In this document: one piece after another, positions 1-8,590 of the stretch
Numbering within the stretch: position 1 is the stretch's first letter
Layout of the letters: each line of letters begins with the position of its first letter
IMG/VR virus record: IMGVR_UViG_3300027816_000051
Span: 1 to 64,000 of that record
DNA length: 64,000 bases
Direction: 5' to 3' (one strand)
Made by a program: the position numbers and the translations under genes
Notes under the pieces: model-generated
Database searches by the model: none
Told to the model about the DNA's origin: nothing
What the model saw: only the letters and a program-made list of their open reading frames with translations

Positions 1-57
1 TCGAACTGGCATCTTCAGATTGGAAGTCTGAAGTAATGACCGTTATACGATATTCGC
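1..57 (-). tRNA. tRNA-Gly(TCC), 3' end cut by window edge
   Basis: Minus strand GCGAATA...TCAGA CTTCCAA TCTGA...GTTCGA; acceptor 3' strand lies outside the window. Confidence 0.9.
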
Positions 58-64
58 TTAAAAG

Positions 65-125
65 GTAGACCCGGGCCCAACAAGCCGTTTTCGTACGCAA
101 CGGAAGGGCCCTTTTTAAGGTCTAC
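65..125 (-). ncRNA. Candidate structured spacer RNA (nested rod hairpin)
   Basis: GTAGACC/GGTCTAC, GGGCCC/GGGCCC and CCGTT/AACGG nested stems. Confidence 0.4.
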
Positions 126-526
126 TTACTTTGATATCTCCATTTCCTACCCTTACCTCTTCGACCAAAAAATTCTGTTAAAGAATGACAGTTAGGACAG
201 AGTAACTCAACATTTGATAAATCATGATTATGTGGGTTACCATCTATATGATTAATTTGGATTGGGACTATCCCTGTATGTTCATTCACTTTATCCCATT
301 CACAAACCATACATTTTTCACCAAATTTTTCTATCAAATATTTTTTTGTTATCTCGTGGATTGTGTCACATCTTGTATATCTTTCAAAATTATTTTCCTC
401 TAAAGATTTGAAAATATTTTTTCTTTGATATTCGAATTGACACTTATTATTACAGTAAAGATTCCTATTAGGAATTTCACAACCACAATTCAAACATTGT
501 TTTTCTTTTTTTTCTCTATTTCTCAT
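122..526 (-). CDS. HNH endonuclease (free-standing, inside tRNA array)
   Basis: CxxC pairs plus C-terminal QINHIDGNPHNHDLSNVELLCPNCHS HNH motif. Confidence 0.9.
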   Translation of the reverse strand: MRNREKKEKQCLNCGCEIPNRNLYCNNKCQFEYQRKNIFKSLEENNFERYTRCDTIHEITKKYLIEKFGEKCMVCEWDKVNEHTGIVPIQINHIDGNPHNHDLSNVELLCPNCHSLTEFFGRRGKGRKWRYQSK

Positions 527-2522: not shown

Positions 2523-2724
2523 AAAATGAAAACCTCCTTCTACGCTCACCGTAGTTGTAGATTTGATTGGACATAGTTTACTGTCCACCTGTTGACGTGC
2601 ACATCAGAGCAGGGTCCATCACAGTTCACTTTGGGTCATGTAACTCATTTGGGTAGCTAATCCCAAGAGCCAAAGTTTCTTTCAACGGTGCTAATCCGTC
2701 CTCTGTAAGGAGTTTTTCATTTTT
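2523..2724 (-). ncRNA. Candidate multibranch ncRNA (~200 nt)
   Basis: 16/17-bp terminal stem; several internal hairpins, two with ATTAGC loops. Confidence 0.6.
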
Positions 2725-3099: not shown

Positions 3100-3342
3100 T
3101 TAAAATAAATCTTCACACCATATTGGAGTCTTTTCACCAACGTAAGAACCGGAAACATTAAATTCAAAATATTCTACCGCTTCTGTCATATCCATTCCTT
3201 GATTCATAAGTATAGTGATACACTTCTCAACAGAATAGATTAATCTCATTGAAGATGTTTCAATTCCTATTACCGCATCATCAAATCCATCAGCAATTAA
3301 GATTTGTTCATCTTCGTATTGTTCTAAAATTTTTTCTAACAT
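3100..3342 (-). CDS. Hypothetical phage protein
   Basis: Start moved to MLEKIL (3342); ADGFDDAVIG...EYFEFNV..SYVGE.TPI is a protein-like pattern; upstream part of the track ORF is tRNA-Glu. Confidence 0.8.
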   Translation of the reverse strand: MLEKILEQYEDEQILIADGFDDAVIGIETSSMRLIYSVEKCITILMNQGMDMTEAVEYFEFNVSGSYVGEKTPIWCEDLF

Positions 3343-3370
3343 ATTGGTTTTTTTTAATTTAATTTCAGTG

Positions 3371-3442
3371 TAGCCCGACGGGGAATCGAACCCCGCTTTC
3401 ATCCGTGAAAGGGACGTGTCCTAACCGATAGACGACCGGGCC
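3371..3442 (-). tRNA. tRNA-Glu(TTC)
   Basis: CGTCC CTTTCAC GGATG anticodon arm. Confidence 0.93.
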
Positions 3443-3536: not shown

Positions 3537-3540
3537 AATT

Positions 3541-3746
3541 ACCCCACCTGAGATTACGGTGAGTAGTCATTTCGGTTTATTTTCTTTCAAACAACCTGAA
3601 GGGCGTCCCCGTTAAAAAAAGTCAACACTACTGGGAGGAGGTGTGTCGCTCTCCTTTGTTCCCATGAAGTCCCACTCGCGCCGTAGACTTTCTGCGGAAT
3701 CATTCTTAAAGTCTTGATTCGAAGACTCTGAGTATCTCTTACTCAT
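3541..3746 (-). ncRNA. Candidate structured ncRNA (~205 nt)
   Basis: GC-richer non-coding spacer with hairpins TGAGTA/TACTCA, AGTCTT/AAGACT, GGAG/CTCC, AGTAGT/ACTACT, CTCACC/GGTGGG. Confidence 0.45.
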
Positions 3747-4068: not shown

Positions 4069-4085
4069 TATATTTCAAAGAACAA
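4069..4085 (-). promoter_or_regulatory. boxA-like element (variant)
   Basis: TTGTTCTTTGAAATATA immediately 5' of tRNA-fMet. Confidence 0.5.
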
Positions 4086-4123
4086 ATAAAATATAAGAAG
4101 TAAATTCCATATTTCAAAATGTT

Positions 4124-4201
4124 TGGTTGCGGGACCCGGACTCGAACCGGGAACTTCAGCTTATGAGACTGACGAGATGACCACTTTCTACGCATCCCGC
4201 A
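4124..4201 (-). tRNA. Atypical tRNA(CAT), fMet-like with irregular D-arm
   Basis: TGCGGGA/TCCCGCA acceptor, TCAGT CTCATAA GCTGA, CCA encoded; about 3 extra nt before the D-stem. Confidence 0.7.
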
Positions 4202-4577: not shown

Positions 4578-5006
4578 TTACTTAATTCGTTCATCCCATT
4601 CTTCTTGGGTCCCCAATCTAATTGGAACGAACAATGCAAATCCATCATCATCTTCAAAATGGTTACAATCATCCTCTCTCCAACCAAACTTATATCTCAT
4701 GTGTATAAATTTGTTTGTCTCTTGATTCCATCTTGCGATTGTGGTATTTCTATGTTCACCAATATAAATTTGACCATTTACTAAATCTTTTTTAGGAATC
4801 GCACCTGCGTCAATTAGTTTCGGAACATAGAACTCTCTCCATTCTTTTTCATCCACTCTTGGAAGAGTTGGGACATCTTCGGGATTATTAATCTTTGGTA
4901 AATTCTCCCAATGATTCCTAATCATTCTTTCCCTCTCTTCTTTTAGTTTCATTTTCTCCGCTTCAAATTTCATTTTGACGGCGTTGATGTTATCATTTCT
5001 TTCCAT
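4578..5006 (-). CDS. Hypothetical protein
   Basis: Start moved to MERNDNI (5006); upstream part of the track ORF is tRNA-Trp/Val sequence. Confidence 0.8.
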   Translation of the reverse strand: MERNDNINAVKMKFEAEKMKLKEERERMIRNHWENLPKINNPEDVPTLPRVDEKEWREFYVPKLIDAGAIPKKDLVNGQIYIGEHRNTTIARWNQETNKFIHMRYKFGWREDDCNHFEDDDGFALFVPIRLGTQEEWDERIK

Positions 5007-5400: not shown

Positions 5401-5473
5401 TGGTACCGACAGGAATTGAACCTGTGACACCCAGATTTTCAGTCTGGTGCTCTACCAACTGAGCTACGGTACC
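5401..5473 (-). tRNA. tRNA-Phe(GAA)
   Basis: CCAGA CTGAAAA TCTGG. Confidence 0.95.
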
Positions 5474-5575: not shown

Positions 5576-5582
5576 ATAAAAC

Positions 5583-5610
5583 AAAAAAACCTCGAGATTT
5601 CTCCCGAGGT
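5583..5610 (-). terminator. Intrinsic terminator of tRNA leader 2 (attenuator-like)
   Basis: ACCTCGGGA-GAAA-TCTCGAGGT followed by a T run. Confidence 0.85.
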
Positions 5611-5638
5611 TCCTTTATATCGTTTTAAACTAAACAAC

Positions 5639-5728
5639 TTACAAGACACCTCGGGACATGCAAATATCAGCCACCTCCGCCCATTTTGAACAGATTGTAA
5701 ATGACATTGTATGTGTAAAGCGTCTCAT
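5639..5728 (-). CDS. Putative leader peptide (29 aa, MRRFTHTMSFTICSKWAEVADICMSRGVL)
   Basis: Read by hand; between promoter and terminator; contains TCCCGAGGT, a perfect 9-nt complement of the terminator 5' arm. Confidence 0.6.
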   Translation of the reverse strand: MRRFTHTMSFTICSKWAEVADICMSRGVL

Positions 5729-5758
5729 TGAAGTTTTATTTAATTTTAAAATCTTTTA

Positions 5759-5790
5759 CAAAGATAATAATAAGTATGCTGAAAAACAAG
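5759..5790 (-). promoter_or_regulatory. Bacteroidota sigma70-type promoter heading the tRNA array
   Basis: CTTG-N20-TATCTTTG. Confidence 0.8.
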
Positions 5791-5843
5791 AAAAGTTTGA
5801 AATTTTTTTAAAAAAATATATATAACAATCTCGATTGCCGAGG

Positions 5844-5851
5844 TATTTATA
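5844..5851 (+). promoter_or_regulatory. Putative phage late-promoter motif TATTTATA
   Basis: Same octamer precedes many structural genes on either strand. Confidence 0.6.
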
Positions 5852-5887
5852 GTAAACCAAATAAATAAACTAAACTAAATTACAACT

Positions 5888-6142
5888 ATGAACTTCAAAA
5901 AATGGATTATTGACCTTTTCAAAGATGAAAGAGGGTCAACTTCAATCAAACCGGTAATCGCCCTTTTAGGTGCATTATTCCTTTGCGGAACCATGATGGC
6001 AAATTCTTTTACACATGGTGACATTAAACCATCAGAAGAATTGGTAAACGCGGTGATGGTCATTACCGCTATTGGAATGGGTGCAGATACTTTAGATAAG
6101 TTCTCACATAAAAAGAAATCAGACGACGAAGTTTCTGAGTAA
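5888..6142 (+). CDS. Small 2-TM membrane protein (holin-like)
   Basis: Two hydrophobic segments and a charged C-terminus. Confidence 0.6.
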   Translation: MNFKKWIIDLFKDERGSTSIKPVIALLGALFLCGTMMANSFTHGDIKPSEELVNAVMVITAIGMGADTLDKFSHKKKSDDEVSE

Positions 6143-6147
6143 AAATT

Positions 6148-6172
6148 ATGGGGTTAGATAACCCCATTTTTT
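6148..6172 (+). terminator. Intrinsic terminator
   Basis: ATGGGGTT-AGAT-AACCCCAT plus T run. Confidence 0.7.
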
Positions 6173-6179
6173 CTTTTTT

Positions 6180-6677
6180 GTGATGAAGAGACTGCCCATC
6201 ATATTATTATTATTTCTAATATCATTTGGATTTTCGAATCTGAATGCCCAAACTATTGTTGTTGATACGGTAATCAATAACATTAAAATTGGTCCGTTCA
6301 CCGAAAATAAGAATTTGGCTTTCGGTGTTAAAAATATAATTGAAGAAATCATCAATGAACAGGATAGTTTAATTCTGATTACAGATAAAAATAAAGCAGA
6401 CTACAAAATTAAAGTTGAACTCATATTTTTTGACATTGTAACGACTAACTCGGGGGTTAGTATTTTTCACGAAGACAAAACAACCACCGTCATAAGAATG
6501 AAAGGTGTATTGTACAAAGGTGATAAAAAAATTAAACAGGAATTTTCGGAAGGTAAATCAACCGAAATTTCAACCTCAACCATAATGATTGATGAGGGTG
6601 GTAAATTCAATCAACAATCTGCTAGTTCGGCATTAAAGAAAACAACTCAAAACCTAATAAACAAACTAATACTATGA
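6180..6677 (+). CDS. Exported protein, probable CsgG/TolB-N-like fold
   Basis: Sec signal peptide; C-terminal G.S.....KFNQQSASSALKK parallels the CsgG-like protein at 9477. Confidence 0.6.
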   Translation: MMKRLPIILLLFLISFGFSNLNAQTIVVDTVINNIKIGPFTENKNLAFGVKNIIEEIINEQDSLILITDKNKADYKIKVELIFFDIVTTNSGVSIFHEDKTTTVIRMKGVLYKGDKKIKQEFSEGKSTEISTSTIMIDEGGKFNQQSASSALKKTTQNLINKLIL

Positions 6678-8590
6678 AAAAATTATTATTTATCCTAACC
6701 GCGTTAATTTTTACGACGACCGCGTTTTCTCAAACTACGCCACAGATTGGTAATCCTGTTGCGTATAAAACAATCAAAAGGGGTGACACCCTTGATGTTG
6801 TGTTTAAATACACACCAGCATCTTCTGTTGATGTTAGAACTTTCCAAGTTGATTTTCAATATAGAAAACAACTTTTCACTCACGTATCAACAACTGTCGA
6901 CCCAACTGTGAGTACTATGACACCAGCACTTTCGATTAAGTTCTTTAACAACTACAAATACTCAAGCTACAGTTCGGGAACTGGTTTGTACTCATATTCA
7001 ACGGATACAAATTACACTGTGGCAAGAAACTTTTTGGTTTTGTCAAGTGGTTCTCAAATCACCCAAGACACCTTTTTGATTCACAACAAATTTATCATCA
7101 ACGATGTTGAATCGAACTTCGACGCGGACAGTGTTGAAATAAACTGGGCTCGAATGTTCAAATATGACGGTACTACAATAGGTGATAACATTGCAATCTT
7201 AGATGTTCAAGACATGCATCTTGAACTTTTGGGTAACTTGGTTATCAGTGGTGTTGTTGAATTACCGCCAACAATGAAACTAAATGGTAGAAGACCAACA
7301 GTTATATGTACAAAATACAACACAGGTACATTTGTATCATCAGCACTTTGTGACACTGCGGGTTTCTACTCACTTAACAACGTAGATAAAAATACTAAGT
7401 ATAAATTACTTGTAAGATTCCCCGCGGATAGTATGGAAGTTTTCAGAGATTACGCAGTGACAATATCAGACGCGGTAAAAACATATGATGAATATACAGT
7501 AACTGATGTAAACCAAGGATTTGGTCAACAATATTTGAAAAATGGCTTGGCTTATCTAATAGGTGATATGAACCAAAACGGAAAGTTAGATGGTGGTGAC
7601 CCATACTTGATTTATGCAAACGTTAGTGGTATGAAAAAAATTGACACCACAACCATGATTAGAACATTCCACGCTGATGTTTATGATTCATTAGTGTTAG
7701 GTTCAACACAATGGAATGATTGGCCAAATCATTTAACCGCCACCAATTTTATTACTGATAGTGTTGGATTAACTAATAAGACAGTAAACATTAAGTACTT
7801 TATTCAAGGTGATGTTGACAGAACTTACTCATCGAGAGTATGGAACTCATCAGGTGTATTAGTAGCTAAGGCGGTGTTTAAAGGTAAATTAGATGTTGAG
7901 ATACCTAATACCGCATCATCAGGTAATCAACCAATATACGTACCATTTAATGTAAACACTAATGGTGATAATAATTATGGTCTACAGTTTGAAATGAAAT
8001 ATGATAAAAACAAGGTTAAATTTGAAGAAATCATATCTAATTTTAACGGAGGTCCATGGTTACAGTACGTTACACATGACGCAACTGCTGGTACAATTAG
8101 ATTTGGTGGTATGAATAACCAATTTAAAGATGGTTTAATTGGTCAAGCAACACCATTTAAATTAAAATTTTCACCTATTGGAAATAATGATATTGTGAGT
8201 AATATTTACGTTAGACAATTAATGGACGCATCCGATGAAAGAGGTGACCACTTGAATATTGACTTAGTTAGTAGTGTTGCTGTTATTATGTACAAAATGG
8301 CACCACCTATGAATCAAGACATTGATGAAATTACAGCATCAATTCGTCCAAACCCAACTGGTGGTTGGTTTGAATTAGAAGTAAAATTTCCCAACCCAAA
8401 CATGTCAATGAATGTTTCCATCTATGATAATAGAGGTCAACTAATTAAACAAGTTGGTTCTGTTACCACTAACTATATGGAAACAACTGCCTACAAACAA
8501 ATTGATATGAGTTCTGCATCATCAGGTAATTATTATCTGATTTTGAATAATTATAATAAACAATTAACAAGACAATTTATAAAAGTTTAA
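6674..8590 (+). CDS. T9SS type-A-sorted protein with cohesin-like and dockerin-like modules
   Basis: Signal peptide; GDMNQNGKLDGGDPYLI Ca-loop and later QGDVD; GLQFEMKYDKNKVKFEEI...IRFGG cohesin-like; C-terminal IRPNPT...IYDNRGQLI...GNYYLIL...QFIKV sorting domain. Confidence 0.8.
   Translation: MKKLLFILTALIFTTTAFSQTTPQIGNPVAYKTIKRGDTLDVVFKYTPASSVDVRTFQVDFQYRKQLFTHVSTTVDPTVSTMTPALSIKFFNNYKYSSYSSGTGLYSYSTDTNYTVARNFLVLSSGSQITQDTFLIHNKFIINDVESNFDADSVEINWARMFKYDGTTIGDNIAILDVQDMHLELLGNLVISGVVELPPTMKLNGRRPTVICTKYNTGTFVSSALCDTAGFYSLNNVDKNTKYKLLVRFPADSMEVFRDYAVTISDAVKTYDEYTVTDVNQGFGQQYLKNGLAYLIGDMNQNGKLDGGDPYLIYANVSGMKKIDTTTMIRTFHADVYDSLVLGSTQWNDWPNHLTATNFITDSVGLTNKTVNIKYFIQGDVDRTYSSRVWNSSGVLVAKAVFKGKLDVEIPNTASSGNQPIYVPFNVNTNGDNNYGLQFEMKYDKNKVKFEEIISNFNGGPWLQYVTHDATAGTIRFGGMNNQFKDGLIGQATPFKLKFSPIGNNDIVSNIYVRQLMDASDERGDHLNIDLVSSVAVIMYKMAPPMNQDIDEITASIRPNPTGGWFELEVKFPNPNMSMNVSIYDNRGQLIKQVGSVTTNYMETTAYKQIDMSSASSGNYYLILNNYNKQLTRQFIKV

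Follow-up and report, generated by a model that had tools for sequence, protein, structure and literature searches.

We analysed the first 64,000 nucleotides (the window) of the 288-kb IMG/VR contig 3300027816_000051, from a giant phage. ARAGORN identified 23 tRNA genes on the minus strand, from position 5473 down to 573, and Rfam models added a partial tRNA at 1-57 and a weak one at 5575-5506. The long genes to the right run on the plus strand from about 5888-6180 onwards, so that 5580-5888 is a divergent intergenic region. Read on the minus strand, this region contains a promoter-like element, a 29-codon open reading frame (ORF), an antiterminator segment and an intrinsic terminator (together, leader 2, or L2). 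A second unit of the same layout, leader 1, lies further down the array (Table 1). Pfam searches of the neighbouring ORFs identified no regulator. A protein in the window with a type-IX-secretion sorting domain, together with the promoter type, points to a Bacteroidota host.

Table 1. Features of the two leader units and associated tRNA genes (all on the minus strand; roles are predicted from sequence).
Feature	Coordinates	Description
Leader 2 promoter-like element	5790-5759	CTTG (-33-like, 5790-5787), 20-nt spacer, TATCTTTG (-7 box, 5766-5759; Bacteroidota TAnnTTTG type)
Leader 2 ORF	5728-5639	ATG, 29 codons plus TAA; peptide MRRFTHTMSFTICSKWAEVADICMSRGVL; codons 3-24 form the proposed sensor part
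Small hairpin inside the ORF	5694-5676	Codons 12-18
Leader 2 antiterminator segment	5656-5648	TCCCGAGGT, codons 25-27; ends 9 nt before the end of the stop codon
Leader 2 terminator	5610-5578	5' arm ACCTCGGGA (5610-5602), loop GAAA (5601-5598), 3' arm TCTCGAGGT (5597-5589), T-rich (U) tract (5588-5578)
tRNA-Ala(UGC)-like gene	5575-5506	G3:U70; one unpaired base in the acceptor stem
boxA-like 19-mer	5500-5482	TTGTTCTTTGACATATTGG, core GTTCTTTGACA; 8 nt before tRNA-Phe
tRNA segment behind leader 2	5473-3370	Phe, Lys, Val, Trp, Arg(acg), Cys, His, Ile(gat), Met, Met, Thr, Asp, Ser(tga), Glu
boxA variant without a leader	4086-4070	TTTGTTCTTTGAAATAT; inside the segment, before a tRNA-Met
Leader 1 unit	3083-2822	Precedes Leu(taa) through Gly(gcc) and beyond
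Leader 1 promoter-like element	3083-3053
Leader 1 ORF	3035-2931	34 codons
Leader 1 antiterminator	2953-2948	GTTCGG
Leader 1 terminator	2911-2877
Leader 1 boxA-like 19-mer	2840-2822	Between the leader 1 terminator and tRNA-Leu

The observation made in the first-pass annotation is confirmed, as each element of the promoter, ORF, antiterminator and GAAA-capped terminator lies where it had been placed. The hairpin lies 29 nt after the stop codon, and the antiterminator 9-mer is the exact reverse complement of the terminator 5' arm and almost a copy of its 3' arm. A simple terminator scan did not list this hairpin, because A-U pairs extend the stem into the U tract, but it is clear from folding. 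The terminator folds at -19.3 kcal/mol (z -5.2 against shuffles), the antiterminator hairpin at -24.6 kcal/mol (z -6.3), a hairpin spanning the ORF, in which the start of the ORF pairs with the antiterminator region, at -31.4 kcal/mol (z -3.4), and the whole 177-nt leader at -59.9 kcal/mol (z -7.0). The first three are the mutually exclusive structures of a classical attenuator. The duplex between antiterminator and 5' arm is -19.0 kcal/mol, against -9.6 +/- 2.2 for shuffles (z -4.2), with 0 of 300 shuffles as good. The terminator is a 9-bp GC-rich stem, and its 22-mer is exact in 10 IMG/VR loci.

Several features were missed in the first-pass annotation. Five nt after the U tract lies a tRNA-Ala-like gene, which scores 31.8 bits against the Rfam tRNA gathering score of 29 but is not called by ARAGORN. 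In two related loci (L011 and L061; L numbers designate the loci retrieved in our searches) ARAGORN calls a normal tRNA-Ala(tgc) at the same place. There is no room for another promoter between the U tract and this gene. Also missed was the boxA-like 19-mer, of which exactly two copies occur in the window, one behind each leader. Its core GTTCTTTGACA matches the published boxA consensus GYTCTTTAANA at 10 of 11 positions (PMC5725501). In a Balneolaceae MAG (L081), the exact 19-mer lies in the 16S-tRNA-tRNA-23S spacer, 120 nt before 23S, and a variant lies about 90 nt before 16S. We therefore read it as an rrn-type boxA, although the genomic support is thin: a primer-site search found rRNA in only 1 of 38 genome loci, and Rfam confirmed it there alone among the 18 loci scanned. 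Assuming equal base frequencies, we estimate that about 4 of the 38 genome hits could be due to chance. Thus, the assignment rests on that one operon and the consensus match.

The third feature is the promoter pattern shared by the two leaders, which occurs nowhere else in the 64 kb (two occurrences against 0.08 expected). An exact TAnnTTTG lies 17-39 nt before the ATG in 14 of 39 related units. However, the generic pattern TTTG-N19-TAnnTTTG is not enriched in the window (2 against 1.0) and TATCTTTG alone is only weakly enriched (9 against 4.2). Promoter function is inferred from the Bacteroidota consensus.

The same unit design recurs in many uncultivated phages, which was also not recognized in the first-pass annotation. 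The exact boxA 19-mer is present in 69 IMG/VR contigs, usually directly after a GC-rich hairpin with a U tract and about 10 nt before a tRNA. Of 60 distinct boxA-linked terminators, 58 have an ATG ORF of 20-60 codons whose stop ends 15-40 nt before the 5' arm, whereas shuffled flanks give 4.0 +/- 1.9. Flanks were annotated automatically, with the ORFs of L011, L036 and L040 assigned by hand, and the stop-to-arm spacing is 17-34 nt in correctly called units. The terminators differ in sequence, but a stretch in or near the last codons of each unit is complementary to that unit's own 5' arm (e.g., 12 nt in L040, 11 in L023, and 10 in L001 and L051). Duplex energies against shuffles give a mean z of -2.44 over 38 units, of which 24 have z < -2. 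The complement most often ends 1-13 nt before the end of the stop codon, although in several units it ends 19-30 nt before. BLAST of the L2 region, leader 1 and an unrelated unit (L015) against cultured phages returned only tRNA hits or nothing, and no cultured relative was identified.

Close relatives of L2 (L068, L070-L073) show synonymous third-position changes and a TAA>TGA stop. L2 homologues keep the frame and retain M[RI][RQ][FS]THTMSFTICSKWA[ED], and the distant relatives L011 and L061 keep the first 18 residues but have a different antiterminator and terminator pair that still matches, with two to three compensatory pairs in the terminator. Thus, the ORF is under coding selection and the switch is under structural selection. 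The small hairpin inside the ORF is kept in 8 of 8 homologues (pairs at alignment columns 60-67/71-78). As these pairs do not vary they cannot be assessed by covariation, and we infer only that it may be an RNA polymerase pause or coupling hairpin. Nearly all units share the peptide header MK(N)xx(H/N)I, and a nearly universal ACAYA motif lies 12-21 nt after the ATG, where conservation is at the nucleotide level in two reading frames. We considered whether ACAYA pairs with UAUGU just 5' of the antiterminator, but it does so in only 6 of 39 units, and this was rejected as a general rule. Pairing between the start of the ORF and the antiterminator (the 1:2 hairpin) is clear in L2 (z -2.95) but weak or absent in many units (mean z -1.35).

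The key result concerns the codons. Codons 3-24 of leader 2 use only the amino acids Arg, Phe, Thr, His, Met, Ser, Ile, Cys, Lys, Trp, Ala, Glu, Val and Asp, which are the 14 species of the tRNA genes between leader 2 and leader 1, counting the Ala-like gene. Under strict wobble rules, 23 of 29 codons are cognate to this segment and 6 of 29 to the next one, and every one of the 14 species has a codon. Codons 6-24 of leader 1 are Tyr, Ile(ATA), Gln, Gln, Pro, Leu, Asn, Asn, Pro, Leu(CTA), Ser(AGT), Gly, Asn, Gly(GGG), Arg(AGA), Gly, Ile(ATA), Tyr and Leu. The tRNAs after leader 1 are Leu(taa), Arg(tct), Pro, Asn, Leu(tag), Tyr, Ile(tat), Met and Gly(gcc), and the near-identical contig L038 continues with Gly(tcc), Gln(ttg) and Ser(gct). 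All 12 are represented, at isoacceptor level.

This idea was formed on the window and then tested on the other loci. In 27 of 28 non-redundant units, each with at least four downstream tRNAs, every amino acid of the downstream tRNAs is in the peptide. Permuting tRNA sets among units gives 6.6 +/- 1.9 (maximum 16; 0 of 20000 as high), and random peptides of phage composition give 3.2 +/- 1.6 (0 of 5000). The exception, L004, covers only 12 of 15 tRNA types. At anticodon level, 243 of 253 anticodons have a strictly cognate codon, against 220.8 +/- 3.8 when synonymous codons are redrawn (0 of 5000), and for the split-box tRNAs (Leu, Arg, Ser, Ile and Gly) the count is 65 of 71 against 50.2 +/- 2.8 (0 of 5000). 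In an independent set of 12 new units anchored on the boxA variant, 8 are fully covered, against 1.9 +/- 1.2 (0 of 20000). The units in these tests fall into about 15 peptide families that share ancestry and so are not fully independent, and the tRNA segments are cut by locus ends. Cognate residues are concentrated in the core (67%, or 83% where the segment is long) rather than in the last six residues (38% and 58%), and the core is where an attenuator needs them.

Peptide and tRNA content also change together within families. L011 has neither Val in the peptide nor a tRNA-Val, and L029 differs from L016 in Asn, Phe, Cys and Lys in both peptide and tRNAs. The L041 and L035 peptides are built almost only of Met, Asn, Cys, Ile, Tyr, Asp and Glu, which is exactly their tRNA set. 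L052 and L136, close relatives in the MKNLHI family, do not show this joint change: their peptides are nearly the same, with a tRNA-Phe downstream in L052 and a tRNA-Arg in L136, but both contain Phe and Arg and so cover their own tRNA sets.

We conclude, with fairly good confidence, that leader 2 is a ribosome-mediated (leader-peptide) transcription attenuator of the trp/his type that gates a block of phage tRNA genes. In this model, transcription starts at a host-type promoter and a ribosome translates the 29-codon ORF. If every codon is decoded promptly, the ribosome would reach the stop codon and cover the antiterminator, the terminator would form, and transcription would end about 5 nt before the first tRNA. 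The gap of about 17-34 nt between stop and terminator would leave the terminator clear of a terminating ribosome. If the ribosome stalls in codons 3-24, the antiterminator would remain free to pair with the 5' arm, and RNA polymerase would read through. It would then transcribe the boxA, which we infer recruits NusB/NusE-type factors that carry polymerase, in a termination-resistant form, through the 2-5 kb of untranslated, hairpin-rich RNA. The sensor would therefore report shortage of any tRNA that the block can supply, so that the phage probably makes these tRNAs only when ribosomes run short of them, and the products would switch off their own synthesis. Leader 1 would do the same for the second block. 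Candidate triggers of shortage are codon-usage mismatch, decay of host tRNAs after host shut-off, and tRNA-cleaving defence. All of the evidence is computational: the analysis establishes the sequence elements, the alternative structures, ORF conservation, covariation and the codon-tRNA correspondence, whereas promoter activity, translation, termination, read-through and its dependence on translation and charged-tRNA supply, and Nus binding are inferred.

The interpretation given in the first-pass annotation is thus only partly supported. The proposed architecture and ribosome-dependent attenuation of tRNA transcription are strongly supported by the comparative data (ORF conservation, covariation and coding-type substitutions). 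However, the annotation took leader 2 to head the whole tRNA array and to sense general translation capacity. Instead, its codons match, species by species, the tRNA genes of the segment it precedes, and it heads a predicted regulon of 15 tRNAs, the first segment of the array. Some observations do not fit the model easily. Most tRNAs are represented by only one to three codons, often single ones, rather than by runs, making the strength of a stall signal uncertain, and the conserved header codons and ACAYA motif are not explained. In some loci (e.g., L002, L034 and L048) the unit is followed by another promoter-like box and the first tRNA lies 700-1400 nt further on, and the boxA variant without a leader at 4086-4070 suggests additional transcription entry points. 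Even so, only 5 nt separate the U tract of leader 2 from the tRNA-Ala-like gene, and the upstream genes run the other way.

The alternatives that we considered are unlikely. The unit could be an autonomous small gene, encoding a 29-aa peptide or a roughly 170-nt sRNA, that lies next to an array transcribed from other promoters. The promoter-ORF-terminator unit is complete, the attenuated transcript is very stable, and the further promoter-like boxes and the leaderless boxA variant are compatible with this view. However, besides the 5-nt spacing, the antiterminator covaries with the terminator, which a simple gene end does not need, the peptide composition tracks the downstream tRNA set within and between genomes, and peptides are unrelated between families apart from the short header. 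Slightly less likely is a nascent-peptide arrest switch of the TnaC/SecM/Erm-leader type, responding to a small molecule or factor. The 18-residue peptide kept in the L2 family, the shared header and a superficial likeness to E. coli TnaC (MNILHICVTSKW...) favour it, but the header is conserved as nucleotides in two frames, peptide bodies differ completely between families yet each matches its own tRNA set, and the stop codon sits where a terminating ribosome would favour termination rather than read-through. A factor- or ligand-controlled RNA switch (riboswitch, T-box-like or protein-mediated) with an incidental ORF is very unlikely. The alternative hairpins alone could act as a switch and there is a weak His_leader-like Rfam score of 25.4 bits, but no known cis-regulatory Rfam family reaches threshold, the ORF is present in 58 of 60 cases against 4 expected, substitutions are of coding type, and codons match anticodons beyond the amino-acid level. 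Short ORFs are common in the window, but a chance origin of the ORF and the complementary 9-mer in an AT-rich spacer is rejected by every test against shuffles and permutations.

How phages regulate their tRNA genes, and why they carry them, is largely unknown. A broader reading, which we consider somewhat more likely than not, is that phage tRNA arrays are divided into regulons, each gated by a leader peptide whose codons enumerate the tRNAs of that regulon. The phage would thereby measure, codon by codon, whether the infected cell can still decode, and switch on exactly the matching tRNA block. This would be demand-driven feedback control of tRNA supply, and a built-in alarm for host tRNA depletion, whether from host shut-off or from anticodon nucleases, coupled to boxA/Nus antitermination. 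It would be the first attenuator known to control tRNA genes; full-text searches, of an incomplete literature collection, found no report of leader-peptide control of tRNA genes or of boxA in phage tRNA arrays. The idea gives a sharp and cheap prediction, that starving any one represented amino acid or tRNA should open one leader and not the other. It also gives an annotation rule, since the peptide predicts the tRNA block and the reverse, and offers natural parts for sensors of tRNA availability. The result further extends boxA/Nus antitermination, by inference, to phage tRNA arrays of Bacteroidota-type phages.

Among known systems, T-box riboswitches also make a terminator/antiterminator decision that reports tRNA charging. 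However, a T-box binds the tRNA directly, has no ORF and controls aminoacyl-tRNA synthetase or amino-acid genes, and no T-box match was found here. The tnaC leader of E. coli is a short leader ORF with a boxA-like element nearby and similar-looking first residues, but it acts through peptide-mediated arrest at the stop codon and Rho-dependent termination, whereas here the terminator is intrinsic and the peptides vary with the tRNA set. From comparison with the E. coli sequence, and without a statistical test, we judge the likeness to be coincidental. As in the rrn-type boxA sites of rRNA leaders and spacers (boxA is also found at suhB and CRISPR arrays), the element here sits at the head of long untranslated stable-RNA genes, but it is carried by a phage in front of tRNA arrays and directly after a predicted regulated intrinsic terminator.

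The leader-peptide attenuators of amino-acid operons (trpL, hisL, leuL, pheL; Rfam Trp_leader, His_leader and Leu_leader; Bacteroid-trp leader) likewise have a short ORF in the 5' leader, mutually exclusive antiterminator and terminator hairpins, an antiterminator placed where a ribosome at the stop codon masks it, and regulatory codons upstream of it, so that stalling gives read-through. The phage element meets the sequence-level criteria of this class, with a 1:2 hairpin that is clear in L2 but not general, and would work like these leaders, but it is a member of none of the Rfam leader families (the best hit, His_leader, is at 25.4 bits against a threshold of 49). It differs in that the regulated genes are tRNAs rather than biosynthetic enzymes, the regulatory codons are not a run of one amino acid but up to 14 different codons, one to three each, that enumerate the downstream tRNA genes, and a boxA follows the terminator. 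In multivalent attenuators (thrL for Thr and Ile; ilvL/ilvBN leaders for Ile, Leu and Val) one leader also responds to shortage of more than one charged tRNA. Those leaders sense two or three amino acids in clustered runs tied to one pathway, whereas here 4-14 species would be sensed, defined by the adjacent tRNA genes down to isoacceptor level (AGA/Arg-tct, ATA/Ile-tat, CTA/Leu-tag and AGT/Ser-gct).

We identified a freshwater-1 RNA (Rfam RF02979, 84.7 bits against a threshold of 72) inside the tRNA array, between tRNA-Leu(taa) and tRNA-Arg(tct) and in the tRNA orientation. It occupies the same place in the related contig L018 (73.8 bits), and this motif of unknown function thus sits in phage tRNA arrays. 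A relatively GC-rich spacer of about 200 nt between tRNA-Asp and tRNA-Ser(tga) has hairpins and a T run, and although it has no Rfam match it may be another structured RNA. A tRNA cut by the contig end is probably Gly(tcc), by comparison with the near-identical contig L038, and a low-scoring tRNA-Met (35.1 bits) was also identified. Related contigs (L036, L018 and L001) carry a GOLLD RNA, tmRNA genes and a group I intron next to their leader-gated tRNA arrays.

Coordinates of additional features in the window and in other loci
Feature	Locus	Position	Strand
freshwater-1 RNA	window	2562-2623	minus
freshwater-1 RNA	L018	557-619	
ACATA/ACACA motif, first 30 nt of the leader ORFs	window	about 5714-5710 and 3019-3015	minus
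Third boxA variant	window	4070-4086	minus
tRNA-Met following this variant	window	4067-3995	
Sigma-70-like match	window	4117-4088	
GC-rich spacer	window	3540-3745	minus
Inverted repeat	window	5828-5844	
Protein with sorting domain	window	6674-8590	plus
Protein ORFs in the tRNA array	window	122-526, 715-1203, 1336-1944, 2089-2439, 3100-3402, about 4578-5000	minus
GOLLD RNA, tmRNA genes and group I intron	L036; L018; L036; L001	3658-4066; 7375-7771; 1378-1774; 6866-7092	
boxA 19-mer at tmRNA gene	L103	4754-4772	
tnaC of E. coli	L208	236-310	
Truncated tRNA, probably Gly(tcc)	window	1-57	minus
Low-scoring tRNA-Met	window	4124-4200	minus

The leader ORFs share a further signal, as 38 of 39 units carry ACATA or ACACA 12-21 nt after the A of the ATG, often as TTTACATA. 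The motif occurs in two different reading frames, so it is a nucleotide signal and not a peptide motif. It resembles the ACATAT of the boxA 19-mer. Pairing with UAUGU was tested and is not general. A third boxA variant (TTTGTTCTTTGAAATAT) lies directly before a tRNA-Met, without a leader ORF or terminator, and a sigma-70-like match lies nearby. It may be an internal entry point for transcription. In a Phycisphaerales MAG (L103) the exact boxA 19-mer abuts the 5' end of the tmRNA gene, which suggests that boxA is used for other stable RNAs. Just upstream of the leader 2 promoter, and outside the predicted transcript, is an inverted repeat (ACCTCGGCAATCGAGAT on the minus strand) whose arms resemble those of the leader 2 terminator.

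Protein ORFs are interspersed in the tRNA array. One has weak HNH-endonuclease and treble-clef hits, whereas the others match no Pfam family. Beyond the array, a 638-aa protein has a C-terminal type-IX-secretion sorting domain (Por_Secre_tail, E 3e-8). This is a Bacteroidota hallmark and supports the host inference drawn from the promoter type.

We also compared the phage leaders with the tnaC leader of E. coli (L208). TnaC (MNILHICVTSKW...) shares LHI and SKW, along with the nucleotide strings TTACATAT and TCAAAATGG, with the phage leader headers and with leader 2, a likeness that is probably coincidental.
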